Virus record (IMG/VR): IMGVR_UViG_3300022868_000009 | Span: 124,001 to 188,000 of that record | DNA: 64,000 nucleotides | Reading direction: 5' to 3' (one strand) | In this document: positions 1-59,675 of the stretch, piece by piece | Layout of the letters: every line of letters starts with the position of its first letter | How positions within the stretch are numbered: position 1 is the first letter of the stretch | Position numbers and translations under genes: made by a program | Notes under the pieces: model-generated | What the model was told of the DNA's origin: nothing | The model's database searches: none | The model's input: only the letters and a program-made list of their open reading frames with translations

Positions 1-400
1 CTTCCGTAGTTAATTTATATCTACCACCACATTTAGAACAACCATGTCCACTTAGATGATTTGAAGGTGTTTGCCAAAATTCACCATGTTTAAGACATAT
101 TATTCTCACTTTAGTTTTACTATTTACATAATTAACAAAACTATAATCATATTTATCATCATGAACTATATTTGATTTATTAATAAATGATTCTGTATCA
201 TCTTTCATATTATTAGTTGCACAAACAGGACAACCTTGTCCTTCTAAATGTTTAGAAGGACTTTGCCAAAATTCACCATGTTCAAAACATATTATTCTCA
301 CTTTAGTTTTACTATTTACATAATTAACAAAACTATAATCATATTTATCATCATGAACTATATTTGATTTATTAATAAATTCAATTAATTTAATTTTCAT
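1..400 (-). CDS. Partial homing-endonuclease-like protein with tandem zinc-binding repeats (runs off window start)
   Basis: ATG at 400; repeats of FINKSNIVHDDKYDYSFVNYVNSKTKVRIICxxHGEFWQTPSxHLxGxGCxxC, the same repeat type as 36758..37681; about 189-bp DNA repeat period. Confidence 0.75.
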   Translation of the reverse strand, partial: MKIKLIEFINKSNIVHDDKYDYSFVNYVNSKTKVRIICFEHGEFWQSPSKHLEGQGCPVCATNNMKDDTESFINKSNIVHDDKYDYSFVNYVNSKTKVRIICLKHGEFWQTPSNHLSGHGCSKCGGRYKLTTE

Positions 401-3580: not shown

Positions 3581-4636
3581 TTAAAATCCCCAATCATCAA
3601 AGTTTTCAAACTCATCTTTATTTTTTTGAATTGTCTGTTGTATTGAACCACTAAATAAACTATTTAATACCGATAATCTTTTATTAATATCTGGTAAACC
3701 TACTGGTTCTAAAAACCTATTAGCAATTGCCAAAAATGTTTTTTCAAATTGAGTATCATAATCTATCAATACTCTTTCTTTTTCAGTTATTTCATACGGA
3801 TGAAAACTTCTCATATAAGCAAACCTCTCTCCAAGAGTATGGTTACAAAAATACCATTTAACTCGACCACCTTTTAACAAATCATATTTAGTTTTAAACT
3901 CGCTATTTTTATTTAAAAGAAAATTATGTAAAGCGGCGGCTTTAACTGAAAAATGAGCACCTTTAACACAATTAACACCAATTTGATCATCAACTACTTT
4001 ATCTCTATAATTTGATAAAGAAGTCGTCATACTAATATCTTCAATATCAGAGGCTTTAAATTGATTTTTAAGATCTTTCATAATTTTTAAAACCTCACGT
4101 ATATTTAACGTATCAGGATTTTTAAATAAATAATTAATAAATTCCCAAACACCACCTTTCTGCTTTTGACCTCTAACAAATATTGGTGTTGAAGACCTTA
4201 CAATATCTACACCTTTTGGAAAAAAATGTTCCATATCTTCATAAAAAATACCATCTTCCCAAACCACATTATTAATATAATGTTTCTTTTCAAGATGCAT
4301 GGCAGATTTATTAACAGTTTCTAATTCAAAATCATGAATATTTTTAACACCATACTTTTTAGCATATTGGTCTAAATATTTAACAAATGTGTCTTTTACA
4401 TACAATCTATCAAGGGTTAATATAAATTCAAGAGGATCACCTTCATAATCACAAGAGTCCATTATTGGTTGAAACGACAAATATAAACTATTATGAACTA
4501 ATAAATTATTAGCAATAAAGGTGTGAGTTTCATCATCAACTTCTATATCATAAACATATTCTTCTTCTCCAAAATTACCTACACATTCAATTTCTGAAAT
4601 TTCAACCAATTCATAATTATAACATATATTTTCCAT
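3581..4636 (-). CDS. Family B DNA polymerase C-terminal fragment fused to C-intein (49 aa, 4490..4636)
   Basis: YVYDIEV...FIANNLLVHN/SLY intein C-terminus, then KKHY and KGVDIVRSSTP PolB motifs. Confidence 0.9.
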   Translation of the reverse strand: MENICYNYELVEISEIECVGNFGEEEYVYDIEVDDETHTFIANNLLVHNSLYLSFQPIMDSCDYEGDPLEFILTLDRLYVKDTFVKYLDQYAKKYGVKNIHDFELETVNKSAMHLEKKHYINNVVWEDGIFYEDMEHFFPKGVDIVRSSTPIFVRGQKQKGGVWEFINYLFKNPDTLNIREVLKIMKDLKNQFKASDIEDISMTTSLSNYRDKVVDDQIGVNCVKGAHFSVKAAALHNFLLNKNSEFKTKYDLLKGGRVKWYFCNHTLGERFAYMRSFHPYEITEKERVLIDYDTQFEKTFLAIANRFLEPVGLPDINKRLSVLNSLFSGSIQQTIQKNKDEFENFDDWGF

Positions 4637-5789
4637 ATATTTCTTTTATTAATTTTTTAATACTCGGCAAATCACTTTCCCAAATAACAATGATATCTAT
4701 ATCATGATCCTTTTTTAGAAGTGATAATTTTTCTTCATCTTTTTTCCATATATCAGATGATAATTCATTACTAAACGGATTAGGTTTATCATCATGTTTA
4801 AATTTTTTAGGATTAGCATGAAAAACATCACCATTATATTCTATACCTAAATTTAATTCTTTTATATAATAATCTATAAAAACATATCGACCAGTAGATA
4901 ACATCTTACCATATTCTTTATTATTACATTTTTCATAAAAATATGTTTTAAAATCTTTTGATATTTCTTTATCTAATTTCCACAAATAATCCTGTGAAGA
5001 TTTTGATGCTGGATAATTCCTTATCTTAGAATAAAATTGTTGTAATTTAATTAAAGCGTCATTTTTACCGTATATTCTTATATAATTAGATAAATTGTGT
5101 GCTTTTTGTTTACACAATTCATCCCATTTTAATTTACCATGTTTTAACACATAATATTCTTTACTTTTTGTTTCAATTTGTTTTTTAACATAATTTTCAT
5201 ATTTTATTTTACCGAATTTTTTGCCATGTTTTTTTATCAAATTTTCTAATGTAACAGATCTTGATTTATTATAATTATCAAAATCATCTTTATTCCAACC
5301 ATGTTTTTCTTTTTTATATTCAAATAAATTTGATTTTCGTTGTTTATCACAATAGATTTCCCATCTTTCAACTCCTTCATTTACACCATATTTTAAAATA
5401 TAATTTTCCTTTGTTCTAACGTAGTTTAAATTCTTCCATATTTCAGATTCTTTTTCTGGTATATTAAATGCATATGTTGTTATCTTATTTACCATGTTAA
5501 ATATTCTAGCCCTATTCTTATTTTTATACTCAGGATATTTTTCTATCAAACAATCTTCACAAACACTTAAATTATAAATTTTACCATTCACCGATTTAAA
5601 TGTTTTATAAGATTTGCCTTTGTATCCAAATTTTCTTACAGTAAATACAGAATTATAATAAAATATTGGACCATTACAAATTAAACACTTAACAGAATTT
5701 TTATCATAAAAATCTTGAATTTCCTCATAATCATCTTTATTGATATTAAATTTAAATTTTTGTAATTTATTTTTCATATGGTGACACAT
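4617..5789 (-). CDS. Free-standing endonuclease (Vsr/PD-(D/E)XK-like C-terminal domain) between split-intein halves
   Basis: CxxC, KYG/KHG repeats, FIDYY..IEYNGDVFHANP..IVIWES. Confidence 0.8.
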   Translation of the reverse strand: MCHHMKNKLQKFKFNINKDDYEEIQDFYDKNSVKCLICNGPIFYYNSVFTVRKFGYKGKSYKTFKSVNGKIYNLSVCEDCLIEKYPEYKNKNRARIFNMVNKITTYAFNIPEKESEIWKNLNYVRTKENYILKYGVNEGVERWEIYCDKQRKSNLFEYKKEKHGWNKDDFDNYNKSRSVTLENLIKKHGKKFGKIKYENYVKKQIETKSKEYYVLKHGKLKWDELCKQKAHNLSNYIRIYGKNDALIKLQQFYSKIRNYPASKSSQDYLWKLDKEISKDFKTYFYEKCNNKEYGKMLSTGRYVFIDYYIKELNLGIEYNGDVFHANPKKFKHDDKPNPFSNELSSDIWKKDEEKLSLLKKDHDIDIIVIWESDLPSIKKLIKEIYGKYML

Positions 5790-6780
5790 CTTTATCTCTA
5801 TATATCCTTAAAATTTTATCAGTTATTTTCATTTCAGAAGGTTTTACTTCAAATTGTTCACCGTCTCTAAAAACTATCATAGAATGATCATTTGTTACGA
5901 AAATTTCCTCACCTGTTTTTATTTTAATTTTCCATTTTTGTTTAATAACCTTATGTCTTATAACTCTTTTTACTGGTGCATAATATAGCTTTTTTTCAGA
6001 ACACCAATTTAAGATTTTTTCACCAGTTTTAACACTCTCATGTCCCTTCAACGTACTCTCACCCACATTTAATGTATTTTCGTTGTAAAATTCTTCTATT
6101 GTCTTTTCACCATTATTTGTGATAATTACACTATCCTTGTCAACCGAATCCGTATCACCATAAACACACAATTCATCTTTATGAAATTTCGTACTATAAG
6201 TTTCTTTATCATCTTTTGTCATTTCTGTAAAACCTGGCATTTCTTCTCTTTCAGAAATCACAGAACCATCAATTTGTTCAACATTATCTACAAAATTATG
6301 AAGATGTCTCTTATATTTAATATTATAAATTTTATCTTCAATTTTAATAGAATCTTTGTGTTCTTCTAATTTATCAATATCAACATTCCATTCTATTAGT
6401 AAATCATGTAAAGTATTATTACCCCTTCCAATTATTCTATTTCTATTATTCATCATATACCAAACATCACTATCATCAGTTACAATATACGTAAATTCTA
6501 ATAACTTATGAACTTCAATATCATGATACCATTCTTCATAAAAATATTTTTCTATTTTATTTAACATAAATAAAATTACATCTCTACCATGTGCTGTAAT
6601 AGCATTTGCAATATCTTTATTAGATACTACAAATTTAGGGTGAGCAAAAGCACCATAAGTTCCGTTAATCACTAATTTTAGTGCCAATTGCATTGCTTTA
6701 TTGTAGTTATATTCTGATTCTACTTTTGCGATTTTCTTTTTAAGATTCTCGATTTTTTTCTTTTTCTCGGCGAACGTCAT
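5767..6780 (-). CDS. Family B DNA polymerase middle fragment (motif B to YGDTD) fused to N-intein (126 aa, 5770..6147)
   Basis: KLVINGTYGAF (motif B), YGDTD/SVDKDS intein start, VTNDH block B. Confidence 0.9.
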   Translation of the reverse strand: MTFAEKKKKIENLKKKIAKVESEYNYNKAMQLALKLVINGTYGAFAHPKFVVSNKDIANAITAHGRDVILFMLNKIEKYFYEEWYHDIEVHKLLEFTYIVTDDSDVWYMMNNRNRIIGRGNNTLHDLLIEWNVDIDKLEEHKDSIKIEDKIYNIKYKRHLHNFVDNVEQIDGSVISEREEMPGFTEMTKDDKETYSTKFHKDELCVYGDTDSVDKDSVIITNNGEKTIEEFYNENTLNVGESTLKGHESVKTGEKILNWCSEKKLYYAPVKRVIRHKVIKQKWKIKIKTGEEIFVTNDHSMIVFRDGEQFEVKPSEMKITDKILRIYRDKDVSPYEK

Positions 6781-6816: not shown

Positions 6817-8418
6817 TTAAAAGTTTAATGAATATTTTATATTACCACTGTTATATATTCTATAAATACCTCTTTCTAACATTATTTCGTGTTCACTTTT
6901 ATTAGGATCATAACCTTCTCTAACTAAAACATCTTTTCTAAAATTATACCTATATAATCGTTTTAAATTTTTACCATCAAAATAATGATAATTCGGTTTT
7001 GTGTTATGAACGAATTTAAATTCCAATTTTTCATATAGATTTCCTTTACTCCAGCTTCTATCAGCATAAGTAATTATTTCACCCGGATTATAATTTCTGA
7101 TAAAATATTTAAATAATTTTGATGCACCACCAACAACATTAATATTTAATTTGTTACAAAACCTTAACAATTCATACTCTCCTTCTATACTTTTAGACCC
7201 CATTAATTTTCTTTTTTTACCAAAGGTCATTAGAGATACTAATTCATCTTCATAATAAAGACCTATTTTAACAAAAGAACCAACAAAACCTTGAAGATGA
7301 TTATCATTTAAAAAATTTCTAATCAATTTATTATCTATTATCTCTTTAATTATAGTTTTTCTAGCATATATTTTATCAGACTTTCCAATCATATTTAATA
7401 TTCTAGACTTGACAATTTCTTTTTGGTTAAACCATTCATCTTCCCAAATATGTATTAATTGAACACCTTTTTTTAAACAATTGTTTGTTTTATTTAAATG
7501 ATAATCCTTATCCTTATAAAGTTCTGAATGCCAATACAAACCATTAAATTCAAAAGCTAGATTTAAATCTGGTAAATAAATATCTAATTCTTTTCCATCC
7601 AAGATCTCTTTATCACTTGTTATTATTTCATAATTATAGTTTTCTTTAATAAAATTCACGATTTCTAATTCTTTACCTGAAATCTTATAATCTAATGTAT
7701 TACAAACTGTGCATAATATTGTTTTTTGTATTTTATATCTTTGATATAAATTTTTGCTATTAATATTAAAATAATGATCTTTACCACAATCACATTTAAC
7801 ATCTATCGTTCGATCAGTATTTAAAATATAATCTGTTATATTATATTCCGATAATTTAAATAATATATCTTTTTCCCACCTTTTATATGTTAACAAATAA
7901 TATGATTCTGTTTGTGTATACCATTCTTTTCCATATTTTTCAAGATTAGTTTTCTTTATTTTCTCTCTAATTTCATATGAAGAAAGTATCTCTTCCACGC
8001 CATATTTTTCAAGATTTGTTTTTTTAATTTTTTCTTTGACATCTTTATCTAATAATGTACAAGTAACGCCATATTTCTTGAGGTTTGTTTGTTTTGTTTT
8101 ATCTTTTATTTCTTTTATGTGTTGTGGATTTTCAACGCCATATTTTTCTAACATTGTATTTTTTCTTTTAATAGAAGAACATTTTTTACAACTATAAAAA
8201 CCTTGTCTTTTTTTATTTTCTAAATATTTATGATATCTTAGTTGTTTTTCATCTGAACATATCTCACAAACAGCAATTACTTTAACATGTGAATTTTGTG
8301 GCAAATCATTAACATCAATGTCCAATGTTTCACCATTATTACAAACATAATTTTTAGATCTATAATATGTTACATTACGATATGTTATATTAACATCAAT
8401 TCTACTATTTTTAATCAT
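6817..8418 (-). CDS. Putative homing endonuclease (KYG repeats plus Vsr-like domain)
   Basis: TNLEKYG repeats, ELDIYLPDLNLAFEFNGLYWHSE, IHIWEDEW; paralog of 57954..59675. Confidence 0.75.
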   Translation of the reverse strand: MIKNSRIDVNITYRNVTYYRSKNYVCNNGETLDIDVNDLPQNSHVKVIAVCEICSDEKQLRYHKYLENKKRQGFYSCKKCSSIKRKNTMLEKYGVENPQHIKEIKDKTKQTNLKKYGVTCTLLDKDVKEKIKKTNLEKYGVEEILSSYEIREKIKKTNLEKYGKEWYTQTESYYLLTYKRWEKDILFKLSEYNITDYILNTDRTIDVKCDCGKDHYFNINSKNLYQRYKIQKTILCTVCNTLDYKISGKELEIVNFIKENYNYEIITSDKEILDGKELDIYLPDLNLAFEFNGLYWHSELYKDKDYHLNKTNNCLKKGVQLIHIWEDEWFNQKEIVKSRILNMIGKSDKIYARKTIIKEIIDNKLIRNFLNDNHLQGFVGSFVKIGLYYEDELVSLMTFGKKRKLMGSKSIEGEYELLRFCNKLNINVVGGASKLFKYFIRNYNPGEIITYADRSWSKGNLYEKLEFKFVHNTKPNYHYFDGKNLKRLYRYNFRKDVLVREGYDPNKSEHEIMLERGIYRIYNSGNIKYSLNF

Positions 8419-10076: not shown

Positions 10077-10601
10077 ATGGCTGGAAAAAAAACTACACTA
10101 GGTGATCGAGTATTCACTACTGAAAGAGTTAAAGAAATTGAAGAAAAAGAAAATTTAGGACAACTTTTAAAACAACACGAAAAAATATGGTTTAAGAATA
10201 ATCCAGGAGTTAGAAAATCAAATGTAACATTTGCTATGACTAATGAAGAAATTAGTGAATATGCAAAATGTAAACTCTCTGTACATTACTTCGCAGAAAA
10301 ATATTGTAAAATTAAATTAGAAGACAGTACAATAGGTTCAATGAAACTTAGAGACTATCAAAAAAAGATAATTGATTTATACACTAGAAACAGATTCTCT
10401 ATTTTAATGGCCAGTAGACAAACTGGTAAGTGCAATTCTTTTAATACTAAAATATTAATTTTAAATGAAGAAACAAAAGATATATATTCTATCCCTTTTT
10501 ACGAACTTTATTATGATATTATTAGTCAACAAAGAAAATTGTCATTCTTAGAGAAAACAAAAATATATTTATATAGATTATATAATAAAATTGATAATTA
10601 A
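10077..10601 (+). CDS. Terminase large subunit N-terminal fragment plus short N-intein (56 aa from Cys at 10431)
   Basis: YFAEKYCKI, LRDYQ, ASRQTGK/CNSFNTKI; Walker A interrupted. Confidence 0.9.
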   Translation: MAGKKTTLGDRVFTTERVKEIEEKENLGQLLKQHEKIWFKNNPGVRKSNVTFAMTNEEISEYAKCKLSVHYFAEKYCKIKLEDSTIGSMKLRDYQKKIIDLYTRNRFSILMASRQTGKCNSFNTKILILNEETKDIYSIPFYELYYDIISQQRKLSFLEKTKIYLYRLYNKIDN

Positions 10602-10668
10602 TCACATTACCGATTTGTCTAAAAGCCATTAAAATTTATCTATATATAAATGAAAACAATATATAACA

Positions 10669-11655
10669 ATGAAAAAAGAAATATCTGATTATATTATATG
10701 TAAAGTATGTGGTGAAAAAGTAAGAAGAATTTATGGTGCACATTTAAAGAAACATGGATTAACAAGCAAAGAATATAAAGAAATGTTTCCAGATGAACCA
10801 TTAACAACAAAAAATGATAATTTAAAAACAAGTAAAAATTCAGGATTGCATATGAAACAAGAAAAATATAAGAAAATGTTTTCTGAAAAAATAAAAGGAG
10901 AAAAAAATCCAAATCATAAAACAAAAACTACTGAAAAAGACAGGAAATCAAGAAGTCCATTTTCAAAAGATTTTAAAAAATATAAAAATGAACAAGAATT
11001 AATAGAATTTAGAGAAGAAGCATTAAAAGATAGAAAACACACAACTAGATTAGATTATTATTTAAAACAAGGGCTTGATATGGAAACATCCAAAAAAATG
11101 TTGAAAAAAAGACAAACAACATTTACTTTAGATATTTGTGTAGAAAAATATGGCAAAGAAAAAGGTATAGTAATTTGGAAAAATAGACAAGTAAAATGGC
11201 AAGAAAATTTATTATCTAATGGTAATTTAAAATGTGGATATTCTAAAATAAGTCAAGAACTGTTCTATGGTATATTAGAATATTATGATTATGAAAATAA
11301 AAAAGATATTTATTTTGCTACAAAAAATCAAGAATTTTTCATATCCAAAAAAGGAACAGACACAGATCCACGAATTTTTTTACAATACGATTTTTGTGAC
11401 ATGAAATCAAAAAAGATAATAGAATATAACGGTGATAGATATCATGCAAATCCGAAGATATATGAATCAAAAGACAATCCACATCCATTTAGAAAAAATA
11501 TAACATCACAAGAAATTTGGAATAAAGATAAAGAGAAAACAAGGATAGCGCAACAGGAAGGTTTTGATGTTTTAACTATATGGGATAGTGATTATAAAAA
11601 AGAAAAAGAAAAAATTATTCAGAAATGTCTGAATTTTTTAAATTTAAAAATATGA
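10669..11655 (+). CDS. Free-standing endonuclease between split-intein halves
   Basis: CKVC..HLKKHG zinc finger; YDFCD..IIEYNGDRYHANP..LTIWDS; paralog of 4617..5789. Confidence 0.8.
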   Translation: MKKEISDYIICKVCGEKVRRIYGAHLKKHGLTSKEYKEMFPDEPLTTKNDNLKTSKNSGLHMKQEKYKKMFSEKIKGEKNPNHKTKTTEKDRKSRSPFSKDFKKYKNEQELIEFREEALKDRKHTTRLDYYLKQGLDMETSKKMLKKRQTTFTLDICVEKYGKEKGIVIWKNRQVKWQENLLSNGNLKCGYSKISQELFYGILEYYDYENKKDIYFATKNQEFFISKKGTDTDPRIFLQYDFCDMKSKKIIEYNGDRYHANPKIYESKDNPHPFRKNITSQEIWNKDKEKTRIAQQEGFDVLTIWDSDYKKEKEKIIQKCLNFLNLKI

Positions 11656-13952
11656 AAGTAACAATTAAACATATTATTATATTTCTCATTCAATTAATTG
11701 AATATTATGAATTTAGAAATATTGATAAAGATGAAAATAAACCAAATAAAAAGATAGTAGATATTATACCAATAAATAAATATGTAAAAACTGACTATGG
11801 TAATACACCTGTTTCTGAAATAGTTAGAACAATACCATTACAGAGATATGAATTATTATTAGAAAATGATGATAAAATTGAATGCGCAGACACACATATA
11901 ATATATTGTAAAAATCATACTCCAAAATTAGTTTTAGATTTAACCGAAAATGATGAAGTTATTACAATATCTGGACTATCAAAAATCAAACATTTTAAAA
12001 AACTAAGAGGAAAATTATCAATGTTTGATTTAACTATTGATGGACCAGAACCAAGTTATTACACAAATAATATATTATCACATAATACAGTATCAGCTGC
12101 AATTGTTATTCTTCATTTTGTATTATTTAATAATGATAAAGGTTGTATGGTTGTTGCAAATAAAGGAACTACAGTTATAGAAATTATTGATAAAATAAAA
12201 TCTATTTATAAACATTTACCATTCTTCTTAAAAAGAGGTGTAATTAACTGGAATCAAAAATCTATAACATTTGATAATGGTTGTAGAATAAAATCAGAAA
12301 ATAGAACTAAAGAACCTGCTATTGGTTTTACAATCGACCTTTTGTATTTTGATGAGTTTGCAAAAGTACCATCTAACATAATTAGACCCTATTATGGATC
12401 CGCTGTTCCAACAGTATCATCAATCAAAAATTCAAAAATTATAATAACATCTACCCCAGATGGTTATAATTTATTCTACGAATTATTAACTGGTGCAGAA
12501 AAAGCCGAAGGAGATAAAGATAAGAACACATATGAATCCATGAGAGTATATTGGTGGCAAGTTAAAGGTAGAAGAGATACTAAACTTTATTTTAATAAAA
12601 AAATGTTATCTAAATATGGTGTTAAGGAAAGAGAAATTCTTCAAGAACTAGAATTATATGGATACACAATAACAAAAAGAAAAGAGGGTGAAAAATTAGT
12701 TCATATCATAGCATTTGATGAAGATAACGAAAAAACACACTTAGAAAAAATAAGATCAATAAGATTATTTGATAAATTACCTTTGGTTGAAATATGTAAT
12801 GTTACTAATTGGCAAGAAGAAGAAACTAAATTAGTTGGTGGTGAATCAATCTTCAAACAAGAATATGATATTCAATTTATAACAGGTGATAAGTTATTAT
12901 TTGATAGTATAACATTAGAAAGAATACAGAATGCTACAGAAAAATTTGAACATATTCCAATTCCTAATTTTGATAAAAGATTAGCCTTACCTTATGATAA
13001 ATTAGAATTTATTAAAGATAGACCAGATTTATTTGAGATAGAAGAAGTTAAAAAATATCATATGATGTTTTCTATTGATTTAGCTGAAGGTTTAGGTAGT
13101 GATTACACAGTTTTAAATATATTTAGATTATTACCAAAAGACAAAGTTATAATAGAAAAGAACAAACAGAAATTTACAAACATTTATGACTATTTCAAAC
13201 TAGAACAAGTTGGATTTTTTCATTGTAATTACTATTCAGTTAAAGAATTTGCACATTTATTGTATATGATTGCATATGAAATGTTTGATCCTGAAAAATG
13301 TAAAATATCTTTAGAATATAATACTTATGGTGGAGAATTATTAGCACATTTACCAAATGTATTTGAAGGTGATAATGATTATTTTGATGCCACATTTATT
13401 AGAACAAAACACAACCAAAATGATAAATATAGAAAAAAAGGTTTAAAAATAACAAAAGGCAATAAAGTTAAACTTGTTATAAAAGATTATCAAGATGCTA
13501 TTAAAAAACATAGTATAATAGTACATAATGCATTAAATATACTTGAAATGAAAGTTTTTAGTAAAAGAGAAACACCTTCTGGTGATTTTACATACCAATC
13601 AGAAACAGGAAATGATGATACCGTAATGTCATTAGTTAATTTAAGTGCTAGTTTAACATCAGTCCAATTCAAAGATATTGTTGATGATTATATTGCAACA
13701 GTACTAAATGATGAAGATAGAAGAATGATTGAAACAAATGTATCAGAATTTAGTGATGAAACTGTAGATTATAGTTCAGCTATATCAAGTTACAAAAAAG
13801 TATATCTAGATAAATCTAAAAAACCTGGAGTTGGAAATAGTTTTAAATCAAGTCCGTTCGAACAACCAAATCCTTACCAAAAAAAAGGAAATCCATTTGA
13901 AAATAATCCATTTGGTAAAGGTACAACTGGTGTTAGTCCTTTCGGAAAATAA
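11625..13952 (+). CDS. Terminase large subunit C-terminal fragment fused to long C-intein (probable start 11652; intein ends 12086)
   Basis: CADTH block B, YYTNNILSHN/TVSAA; Walker B LLYFDEFA, ITSTPDG, nuclease DLAEGLGSD and NDD. Confidence 0.9.
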   Translation: MSEFFKFKNMKVTIKHIIIFLIQLIEYYEFRNIDKDENKPNKKIVDIIPINKYVKTDYGNTPVSEIVRTIPLQRYELLLENDDKIECADTHIIYCKNHTPKLVLDLTENDEVITISGLSKIKHFKKLRGKLSMFDLTIDGPEPSYYTNNILSHNTVSAAIVILHFVLFNNDKGCMVVANKGTTVIEIIDKIKSIYKHLPFFLKRGVINWNQKSITFDNGCRIKSENRTKEPAIGFTIDLLYFDEFAKVPSNIIRPYYGSAVPTVSSIKNSKIIITSTPDGYNLFYELLTGAEKAEGDKDKNTYESMRVYWWQVKGRRDTKLYFNKKMLSKYGVKEREILQELELYGYTITKRKEGEKLVHIIAFDEDNEKTHLEKIRSIRLFDKLPLVEICNVTNWQEEETKLVGGESIFKQEYDIQFITGDKLLFDSITLERIQNATEKFEHIPIPNFDKRLALPYDKLEFIKDRPDLFEIEEVKKYHMMFSIDLAEGLGSDYTVLNIFRLLPKDKVIIEKNKQKFTNIYDYFKLEQVGFFHCNYYSVKEFAHLLYMIAYEMFDPEKCKISLEYNTYGGELLAHLPNVFEGDNDYFDATFIRTKHNQNDKYRKKGLKITKGNKVKLVIKDYQDAIKKHSIIVHNALNILEMKVFSKRETPSGDFTYQSETGNDDTVMSLVNLSASLTSVQFKDIVDDYIATVLNDEDRRMIETNVSEFSDETVDYSSAISSYKKVYLDKSKKPGVGNSFKSSPFEQPNPYQKKGNPFENNPFGKGTTGVSPFGK

Positions 13953-57953: not shown

Positions 57954-59675
57954 TTAATTCAAAAAACCATTTTTTAAAATACCCCACTCAAAACATATAT
58001 GACCAGAATTATTTATTCTGTAAATACCCCTTTCTAACATTATATCATGCTCTGTTCTATTTGCATCATAACCATCTTTAACCAATGTTTGTTTTCTATA
58101 ATTATATCTATGCCTTCTAACACCATCAACTATGTAATGATAACCTGGTTTTGTTGTGTGACTCCTATTAAAATTTAAATTATCATAAAGATTGCCTTTA
58201 CTCCAACTTCTATCAGCATAAGAAACTATTTTTTTCGGATCATAATTTTTAATAAAATATTTAAACAATTTACTAGCACCACCAACAATATTTGTGTTTA
58301 ATTTGTTGCAAAACCTTAATAACTCAAAATCATATTTTTTAATAACACCTATACCCAATCTATTCTTACCAAACGTCATTAAAGAAACTAATTCATTTTC
58401 ATAATATAATCCTAATTTAACACTAGATCCAACAAAACCTTGTATATGATTATTATCTAAAAATTCTCTTATTAGTTTATTATCGTTAATTTCCTTTATT
58501 TGTGTTTTTCTAGCATAAATTTTATTTGGTGTTTTACCTAATTTATTTAATATCATTGATTTAACTATATTTTGTTTATATTTCCAATCATCTTCATAAA
58601 TATGGATTAATTGAATATCCTTTTCTTCACATTTTTCTGTTTTATTTAAATGATATCTATCAGATTTATATAATTCATTATGCCAATATAAACCATTAAA
58701 TTCAAAAGCTAATTTTAAATCTGGTAAATAAATGTCTAATTCTAATGGCTTTATTATATTTCTTTTATTATTTAAAATTGTTTTGTCATAATTCGATTTA
58801 ATATAATTTAAGAAATCAATTTCAAGTCCAGAAACTGATTTTAAAATAGGATTGCATTTAGTACATAACAAAGTATTAGATCTTCGTCTACTATTCAAAA
58901 GAACATAACTTATTTCAAATTCGTGTCCTTTTTCACACATCATTAAATATTTTTTTTCTTCTAAATTTAAACTTATTACATCATAATCTTCATAATATTT
59001 TAAATATTTATTCATGATTGTTTTTCTTAAACTTTTAATCATTCTGTCTTTTAAATCAATATTATGTAATGGTACAATCACACCATATTTTTCTTTCATT
59101 GTTCTTTGTCTTTTAATTTTAACTAAATCCAATTTTGAAACATTATCAACTCCATATTTACTCAAACACGTTTCTTTATATCTATTATAAATTTCAACTG
59201 ATTTTAATGGACTACTGACATTATAATTATCCTTTAGTGTTTTTAAAGATTTTTTATGAATTTCTTCATTTTGAATAGGTGAATTATAACCATATTTTTT
59301 AATATTAGTTTTGATAATCTTTTCTTTTACTAAAATATTTTCTGATGGTGTTTTTGTACCAAATTTATCTAAACATGTTTGCATTCTTTTATTTTTAACA
59401 TGATTACTTTTATTCATGCATTTCTTAGAACAAAAAGTATAATATCCAATATTAGAATTCTTAAATTTGACAAAATTACCACATTCACATATTACAATAT
59501 TTTTAATATCATTATACCAATGATAAACTTGTTGCTTAAATGGTAAATCATCTAAACCATTTTCAATTACATATTTTTGTATTTCTTCTAGTATACTAGT
59601 AAAATACTTTTCGAGATAATTCTTTCTGAACATTTTACCAGATGAATCTAGATTTTCACTAAAAATACTTTTCAT
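57954..59675 (-). CDS. Putative homing endonuclease between sheath and tube
   Basis: KYG repeats, ELDIYLPDLKLAFEFNGLYWH; paralog of 6817..8418. Confidence 0.75.
   Translation of the reverse strand: MKSIFSENLDSSGKMFRKNYLEKYFTSILEEIQKYVIENGLDDLPFKQQVYHWYNDIKNIVICECGNFVKFKNSNIGYYTFCSKKCMNKSNHVKNKRMQTCLDKFGTKTPSENILVKEKIIKTNIKKYGYNSPIQNEEIHKKSLKTLKDNYNVSSPLKSVEIYNRYKETCLSKYGVDNVSKLDLVKIKRQRTMKEKYGVIVPLHNIDLKDRMIKSLRKTIMNKYLKYYEDYDVISLNLEEKKYLMMCEKGHEFEISYVLLNSRRRSNTLLCTKCNPILKSVSGLEIDFLNYIKSNYDKTILNNKRNIIKPLELDIYLPDLKLAFEFNGLYWHNELYKSDRYHLNKTEKCEEKDIQLIHIYEDDWKYKQNIVKSMILNKLGKTPNKIYARKTQIKEINDNKLIREFLDNNHIQGFVGSSVKLGLYYENELVSLMTFGKNRLGIGVIKKYDFELLRFCNKLNTNIVGGASKLFKYFIKNYDPKKIVSYADRSWSKGNLYDNLNFNRSHTTKPGYHYIVDGVRRHRYNYRKQTLVKDGYDANRTEHDIMLERGIYRINNSGHICFEWGILKNGFLN

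Follow-up and report, generated by a model that had tools for sequence, protein, structure and literature searches.

How can a working DNA polymerase arise from a gene that opens in the middle of the enzyme and is then broken once more inside the catalytic motif? The question is raised by positions 3581-6780 of a 64,000-nt stretch of viral DNA (the window; G000:C1:124001-188000 of the 344,634-bp IMG/VR record IMGVR_UViG_3300022868_000009), which a first-pass annotation made from the letters alone had read as a family-B DNA polymerase (PolB) in at least three polypeptides with a split intein at the active site. In all likelihood we are looking at a huge phage with a split family-B polymerase in which one of the two genes is itself fractured; a trans-spliced C-terminal half (C-half) would work together with a separately encoded N-terminal half (N-half). 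The record has a CheckV completeness of 48%, and the genome of the phage from which it derives (the source phage), a huge phage, should be roughly 700 kb. An independent contig (the sibling contig, G001; IMGVR_UViG_3300023257_000007, 348,222 bp) shows 100% identity to the locus over 12.9 kb, at an offset of ∼85 kb, and record and sibling would together cover ∼430 kb if they are collinear, as the offset suggests. G+C content in 500-base windows is 20–35% over the first 12 kb of the window and 21–28% over the locus. The closest relatives of the source phage are the Lak phages and the huge phages with LR7565xx records, which we take to be those of Al-Shayeb et al. An alternative genetic code was considered, given that Lak phages need TAG to be read as Gln, yet the window reads open under the standard code.

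The locus consists of three minus-strand open reading frames (ORFs) that lie in three different frames by their coordinates, overlap by 23 and 20 nt, and each have their own ATG. They and their parts are as follows.

5767..6780, minus strand: 337-aa ORF, polymerase middle piece plus N-intein
6148..6780, minus strand: middle-piece extein, 211 aa, from 34 residues before motif B to the YGDTD of motif C; matches DNA_pol_B, phrog_262 and phrog_1918
5770..6147, minus strand: N-intein, 126 aa, with Ser1, NX motif and block B/N3; stop codon at 5767-5769
4617..5789, minus strand: putative Vsr-like homing endonuclease, free-standing, 390 aa; phrog_22677 and a fold match
3581..4636, minus strand: 351-aa ORF, C-intein plus C-extein
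4490..4636, minus strand: C-intein, 49 aa; carries block F (VYDIEVDD) and a block G that ends in LLVHN
3581..4489, minus strand: polymerase C-extein, 302 aa plus stop codon, with Ser+1 (SLYLSF), the remaining palm and the thumb

Together, the two exteins account for the C-terminal part of a T4-type polymerase and nothing more. As first noted, the ORF ending at 6780 opens just ahead of motif B (KLVINGTYG, 34 residues into the protein), and its ATG is preceded by just five sense codons (open frame 342 aa). YGDTD finishes at residue 211 and is followed by 126 residues starting SVDKDS; the C piece begins with 49 residues ending LLVHN and continues as SLYLSF, the start of the 302-residue C-extein. 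DNA_pol_B of Pfam matches residues 5–82 of the middle piece (E 3.8e-8). When the exteins were searched separately, rather than as one joined spliced protein, they fell on positions 485–584 and 619–852 (E 5.5e-24 for the latter) of phrog_262, the T4-type polymerase family of PHROGs with 856 positions, and both also matched phrog_1918, a family of C-half-only polymerases. Both are intact and share 50–66% identity with the exteins of relatives; the C-extein is 54.9% identical to that of LR756501 over 94% of its length. The start of the gene lies between motifs A and B, at the tip of the fingers. Judged by these matches, the polymerase C-half, comprising the second fingers helix with motif B, the palm motif C and the thumb, is encoded as a stand-alone gene. 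In the region separating motifs B and C, the middle extein also exceeds those of LR756500, Lak-C1 and PTm1 by ∼60–75 aa; the stretch concerned (residues ∼95–205 of the middle piece; window 6148-6500, minus strand) is comparably long in LR756501 and in locus L117 of the survey described below.

The interruption within motif C has the features expected of a split intein. Ser1 is residue 212 of the middle piece, directly after YGDTD, and aligns with Ser1 of four homologues, while residues 45–50 of the C piece read LLVHN followed by S, that is, the terminal HN and then Ser+1 at residue 50. Block B/N3 is present as TNDH, and the NX motif R-H (VIRHKV) aligns with K-H of phage AS-gz; an NX motif with His preceded by Arg or Lys is specific to Ser1 inteins (PMC10189870). 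The Pfam domain Intein_splicing is detected on residues 218–324 of the middle piece (E 4.5e-9, 36.7 bits, over the cut-off of 35.8). Among solved structures, the N-intein matches best to 9HTH (E 2.7e-10, residues 5–114), the Aes intein (Aes123 PolB1) from T4-like Aeromonas salmonicida phages (PMC11923092), and the C-intein to the PolB16 intein 8CPO (E 4.1e-6). Aes123 PolB1 (PMC11923092) and PolB16 (PMC10189870) are both Ser1/Ser+1 PolB inteins with demonstrated trans-splicing, and the native N-extein of PolB16 ends ...GDTD (PMC10189870). When the window intein was aligned with the split inteins of AS-gz, PTm1, Lak-C1 and LR756500 (n=5), all five were found to share insertion at DTD/S (the slash marks the junction), Ser1, Ser+1, the R/K-H NX motif, T-x-D-H, VYDIE and HN/S. 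The split point is likewise the same in all five, with N-inteins of 118–131 aa and C-inteins of 39–49 aa. Excision gives YGDTD-SLYLSF, matching relatives with an empty site (IYGDTD/SLYISFQP in L130, MYGDTD/SYYLSY in LR756501). These motifs identify the element as a class-1, Ser1/Ser+1 intein, split at the usual endonuclease-insertion point and sitting between D and S of YGDTD/S, and they support its homology to the Aes123 PolB1 split intein. The lengths of 126 and 49 aa and the two serine nucleophiles given in the first-pass annotation are thereby borne out. The intein halves, which reside on separate polypeptides, are predicted to associate: the modelled complex of N-intein and C-intein scored 0.74 against 0.01 for the best control, with at least 87% of contacts agreeing between runs and a partner pLDDT of at least 69. 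Of 78 solved complexes, 51 reached the pass mark used, as did 2 of 108 mismatched pairs, and the pass obtained here may partly reflect model memory of solved inteins.

Between the intein halves lies the endonuclease gene that had been noticed at the outset, co-oriented with its neighbours and overlapping both. Its product is a putative Vsr-like homing endonuclease (390 aa, or 386 aa in the public call, which begins at the ATG at 5777). The N-terminus bears a CxxC...CxxC zinc ribbon; helical repeats and a Vsr-like nuclease domain (residues 259–390; window 4620-5015) are also present. It belongs to phrog_22677 (E 9e-46), a PHROGs family without an assigned function, and has 236 homologues at 39–55% identity, none of them named; C35, C38, C77, D306, E317 and H324 are invariant among the homologues and C80, D351 and E371 nearly so. 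A sequence search of the protein against solved structures gave no match, leaving fold comparison as the informative approach. In an AlphaFold model (25 sequences, pLDDT 91), residues 259–390 resemble Escherichia coli Vsr (1cw0_A; Z 9.9, rmsd 3.0 Å, 114 residues aligned) and the catalytic domain of I-Bth0305I (3r3p_B; Z 9.0, 95 aligned). Foldseek E-values for the whole model are weak (0.03–0.3), and Pfam DUF559 was seen only on the paralogue in the terminase gene terL (E 0.002). Homologues with 30–32% identity are found at the same place in PTm1, several Aes phages (as 'VSR endonuclease'), AS-gz (as 'hypothetical protein') and Lak phages, and it is this Vsr-like family that has been linked to 'fractured genes' (Dassa et al. 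2009, PMC2677866).

If the C-half is a gene of its own, where is the part with the exonuclease and motif A? Among relatives, the answer is consistent: in six of the six complete genomes examined the N-half is a separate gene of ∼500 aa, either adjacent to the C-half or up to ∼280 kb away. LR756501 and LR756504 combine stand-alone, uninterrupted C-halves of 566 and 408 aa with separate, distant N-halves of 504 and 495 aa, and LR756501 has in addition a separate 225-codon frame that weakly matches the exonuclease region. Lak-C1 has all three pieces with the N-half ∼228 kb away, the corresponding distance in LR756500 is ∼10 kb, and in AS-gz and PTm1 the N-half adjoins the C-half pieces. The C-half begins just before motif B in LR756501, LR756504, LR756500 and Lak-C1, with the exonuclease and motif A carried by the N-half gene, as befits the gp43A/gp43B-type split originally proposed. 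The N-halves of relatives span phrog_262 positions ∼94–505; the break in AS-gz is at ∼528. Stand-alone N-halves form a family of more than 1,175 proteins (∼485–507 aa, E ≤1e-50), and 79 of 80 related IMG/VR loci encode the N-half as an unfused protein, the sole fusion being a 950-aa protein with motifs A, B and C (L091, IMGVR_UViG_3300021479_000006). Because this family is large and nearly all of these loci are unfused, the break before motif B is of long standing in the lineage, whereas the intein was added later. In L088, L106 and L108 a 597-aa C-half ORF directly follows the N-half, and the motif C pattern had no match in these three.

In the source phage itself, the N-half was not recovered. 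As had been stated for the window, the exonuclease and motif A portion is missing from it, and searches with Pfam PF03104 and PF00136 and with phrog_262 failed to find it in the rest of the 344,634-bp record as well. No motif A pattern was found in the six frames of the record, tblastn of the LR756501 N-half against the record found no N-half, and none was found on the sibling contig. IMG/VR scans with single or aligned N-halves returned no locus from sample 3300023257, and a metagenome scan with N-halves yielded none tied to the sibling's sample, the contig names carrying no matchable sample number. In the last IMG/VR and metagenome scans, no N-half locus had ≥85% DNA identity to the record. 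Two candidate N-half proteins on long contigs were discarded, both being from other samples. The sole exonuclease-domain match in the 344 kb is a 226-aa protein at the record end (PF10108, E 3.2e-13). It was rejected as the missing N-half, being a stand-alone exonuclease without motif A.

L001:1255-1935, in the last 2 kb of the record, minus strand: stand-alone PolB-type 3'-5' exonuclease, PF10108, 226 aa

Beside it, at L001:436-1263 on the plus strand, is a 275-aa ORF whose N-terminus resembles a glutamyl-tRNA-synthetase-like catalytic core by eye. Of the three or more polypeptides proposed at first, the two C-half pieces are thus seen, and a third is expected for the source phage from its relatives; its gene presumably sits in the part of the genome that has not been assembled. 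Because the record is ∼48% complete, these searches neither establish nor exclude a genome without an N-terminal gene, the finding that the first-pass annotation had named as speaking against its proposal.

A scheme for assembling the enzyme follows from this anatomy. The three genes would be co-transcribed and expressed together, and the two intein halves would bring the 337-aa and 351-aa products together. Trans-splicing by way of oxyester intermediates would then yield a C-half of 513 aa in which the YGDTDSLY active site is intact and which would join non-covalently with a separate ∼500-aa N-half bearing the exonuclease, motif A and the first fingers helix. The split 43A and 43B proteins of phage 25 are reported to co-purify and polymerise (Petrov 2010, as cited in PMC2988022); phage 25 is the only case in which non-covalent assembly of the halves is shown, and we infer it for the source phage by analogy. 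The endonuclease would be of no help to the polymerase. It would instead cut intein-free alleles during co-infection and in this way spread the cassette.

Three observations weigh against this scheme. First, Intein_splicing on residues 13–49 of the C piece (model positions 120–155) has an E-value of 8.1e-6 and stays below the Pfam gathering cut-off. Second, the intein is not cysteine-less: non-catalytic cysteines are present once in the N-intein (NWCSEK) and twice in the C-intein (positions 5 and 18). With these three cysteines, the intein need not be insensitive to redox conditions; PolB16 also contains two cysteines that are non-essential (PMC10189870). Third, no N-half for the source phage turned up in the 344-kb record, the 348-kb sibling or the public contigs tied to its samples.

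The first of these observations would fit a decayed intein, with the pieces left unspliced and at most held together by the intein halves, or with the C-half reduced to a pseudogene while another polymerase does the work. Splicing in the source phage is, after all, something that we infer, and the genome is crowded with selfish endonuclease genes. However, all residues for the four splicing steps are kept and are conserved across distant alleles, the exteins have remained intact at the identities to relatives given above, and an unspliced break would leave a ∼175-aa domain inside motif C. Decay is therefore improbable, although the genome may still encode a second polymerase. The third observation would fit a polymerase lacking a canonical N-half, in which proofreading and the other N-terminal functions come from elsewhere in trans, for instance from the 226-aa stand-alone exonuclease. 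That protein is indeed the only exonuclease-domain match in the 344 kb, and motif A was not found. In family-B polymerases, however, motif A holds the catalytic aspartate, which the C-half cannot replace; moreover, about half of the genome is missing from the record (∼48% complete) and an N-half is present in each of the six complete genomes. We consider this explanation less probable still. Least credible of all is an artefact, in which frameshift errors in an AT-rich metagenomic assembly with homopolymer runs would have broken a contiguous intein with a nested endonuclease, given that the three ORFs occupy three frames with their own ATGs and short overlaps, that the cultured phages PTm1 and AS-gz share the layout, that the endonuclease has its own ∼260-aa N-terminal region and belongs to a free-standing family with 236 homologues, and that the identical sequence of the independent 348-kb contig, together with the calling of all three genes in the ENA and Logan assemblies, argues strongly against an assembly error.

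A fractured gene within an already split polymerase remains the favored reading, and the state of the insertion site among relatives places it in a series. In a survey of 80 IMG/VR loci with a related C-extein, DTD/S was found in the following states.

54 of 80 loci: uninterrupted
19 of 80 loci: split intein, the sibling contig included
3 of 80 loci: contiguous mini-intein of 165–176 aa, no endonuclease
4 of 80 loci: not classified

The cassette is present in L117 and the site is empty in its close relative LR756501. The gene between the halves is of the phrog_22677 type here and in most split loci, of the phrog_3339 type in LR756500, and of a DUF4379/DUF723 zinc-finger type in L134, L149 and L152; in phage MIJ3 it is of the HNH type (PMC6892783). 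L146 retains only a 95-aa endonuclease remnant between the intein halves, and in L157 no ORF of at least 70 codons was found there. The stages represented in the lineage are therefore an empty site, a contiguous mini-intein, a split intein with one of at least three unrelated endonuclease architectures (phrog_22677 Vsr-like, phrog_3339 DUF7487-type and DUF4379/DUF723 zinc-finger, with HNH added by the homologous intein of PA5oct-like phages), a split intein with a remnant, and a split intein without an endonuclease. We see an even chance that the Ser1/Ser+1 allele of motif C is caught here at every gene-breaking stage of Dassa et al., with the split intein serving as a landing pad that is used over and over as one endonuclease tenant gives way to another. 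If this is true, the landing-pad intein in megaphages sits in a polymerase whose other half lies up to hundreds of kilobases off.

The record is heavily colonised by what look like selfish nuclease genes, one of which is the neighbor of the middle piece.

6817..8418, minus strand: second putative homing endonuclease, not part of the polymerase, 533 aa; DUF7487 and phrog_3339

This gene lies 36 nt upstream of the middle piece and matches DUF7487 (E 2.8e-19) and phrog_3339 'homing endonuclease' (E 3.8e-127). Its product is 47% identical to that of the intein-resident gene of LR756500, and a phrog_3339 gene occupies the same upstream position in L130, L141/L142 and L137, relatives whose site is empty or holds a mini-intein. 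The 344-kb record contains at least seven full-length copies of the DUF7487/phrog_3339 gene, including those at 6817-8418 and 57954-59675 of the window. A truncated ORF at window 2-400 (minus strand) contains repeated 'KYDYS...HG.F.Q.P..HL.G.GCP.C' zinc-finger modules (DUF4379), and proteins of the same kind occupy the PolB split intein in L134, L149 and L152.

The record also carries two paralogues of the phrog_22677 endonuclease, one splitting terL in the window and one at ∼86 kb. At window 10077-13952 (plus strand), terL is apparently fractured like the polymerase gene.

10077..10601, plus strand: TerL N piece; a Cys follows Walker A SRQTGK, then ∼56 residues
10669..11655, plus strand: TerL-intervening endonuclease, phrog_22677; 42% identity to the PolB-locus endonuclease in the nuclease core
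11625..13952, plus strand: TerL C piece; ∼153 residues ending SHN/T before the terminase domain

The split of TerL seems atypical in that block B falls in the C piece. The TerL pieces gave no Pfam intein call, and among solved structures the NrdJ-1 intein came closest, with a weak match (E 0.12). A third fractured gene lies at ∼85.4–88.6 kb of the record (L114:2387-5577), where a 408-aa phrog_22677 endonuclease is followed by a 655-aa SbcC/Rad50-like protein. The latter opens with a ∼121-aa intein part ending RTHN/S; its short Walker A N piece was not located.

These findings suggest that very large phages can tolerate an essential replicase made of three separately translated parts, with one splice joint and one non-covalent joint. 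The source phage and its relatives also provide a natural series on how free-standing endonucleases break inteins and genes. In addition, the genome offers a further natural Ser1/Ser+1 split intein, of a kind already characterised in the Aes123/CL and PolB16 inteins, alongside an apparently Cys1, atypically split TerL intein, and the two are candidates for orthogonal pairs.

Comparison with known systems indicates how much of this is familiar. Split gp43 and serine-dependent PolB split inteins were rightly given as established for Aeromonas T4-like phages in the first-pass annotation, as 9HTH and the AS-gz layout attest. Aes123 and AS-gz (MF479730) share with the window the DTD/S site, Ser1/Ser+1, the split point, the K/R-H NX motif, T-x-D-H and a Vsr-like endonuclease in between, and the intein lengths of AS-gz are similar (N-intein 120 aa versus 126 here, C-intein 39 aa versus 49). 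In AS-gz, whose PolB also has a separate gp43A-like N-half, all pieces form one cluster, whereas here no N-half lies within the 344-kb record or the 348-kb sibling, and the middle extein there has 54 aa rather than 211. Full-length similarity to the Aes123 and AS-gz inteins is also low, with tblastn aligning only N-intein residues 79–114, and the window intein differs from that of Aes123 by its three non-catalytic cysteines. The order of N-half, N-intein piece, endonuclease and C-intein piece is annotated in GenBank for AS-gz and PTm1. Lak-C1 (MK250029) and LR756500 likewise have a stand-alone C-half starting just before motif B and a Ser1/Ser+1 split intein at DTD/S; their N-half is encoded elsewhere in the genome, and the phrog_22677-type endonuclease of Lak is ∼32% identical to that of the window. 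Lak nevertheless differs in reading TAG as Gln, and LR756500 in having a phrog_3339-type endonuclease inside the intein, a family that the window has upstream of the gene instead. The arrangement is unannotated in the Lak and LR756500 records, and we found no paper describing it there. The fractured genes of Dassa et al. (2009, PMC2677866) resemble the locus in that split-intein halves flank a free-standing, co-oriented, Vsr-like endonuclease gene in a DNA-metabolism gene, but the eight host enzymes covered there do not include PolB, and the host gene here is already a half-gene. In the Pseudomonas jumbo phages MIJ3 and PA5oct (PMC6892783), PolB motif C is broken by a Ser1...HN/S split intein with 35% N-intein identity, but the intervening gene encodes an HNH endonuclease. 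The arrangement as such is therefore already known from Aeromonas, Tenacibaculum, Pseudomonas and Lak phages, and has been published for Aes123 and MIJ3. What is mildly new is how far apart the two halves of the polymerase are encoded in this lineage, the complete range of intein states that close relatives display, and the occurrence of three fractured genes sharing one endonuclease family in a single genome.

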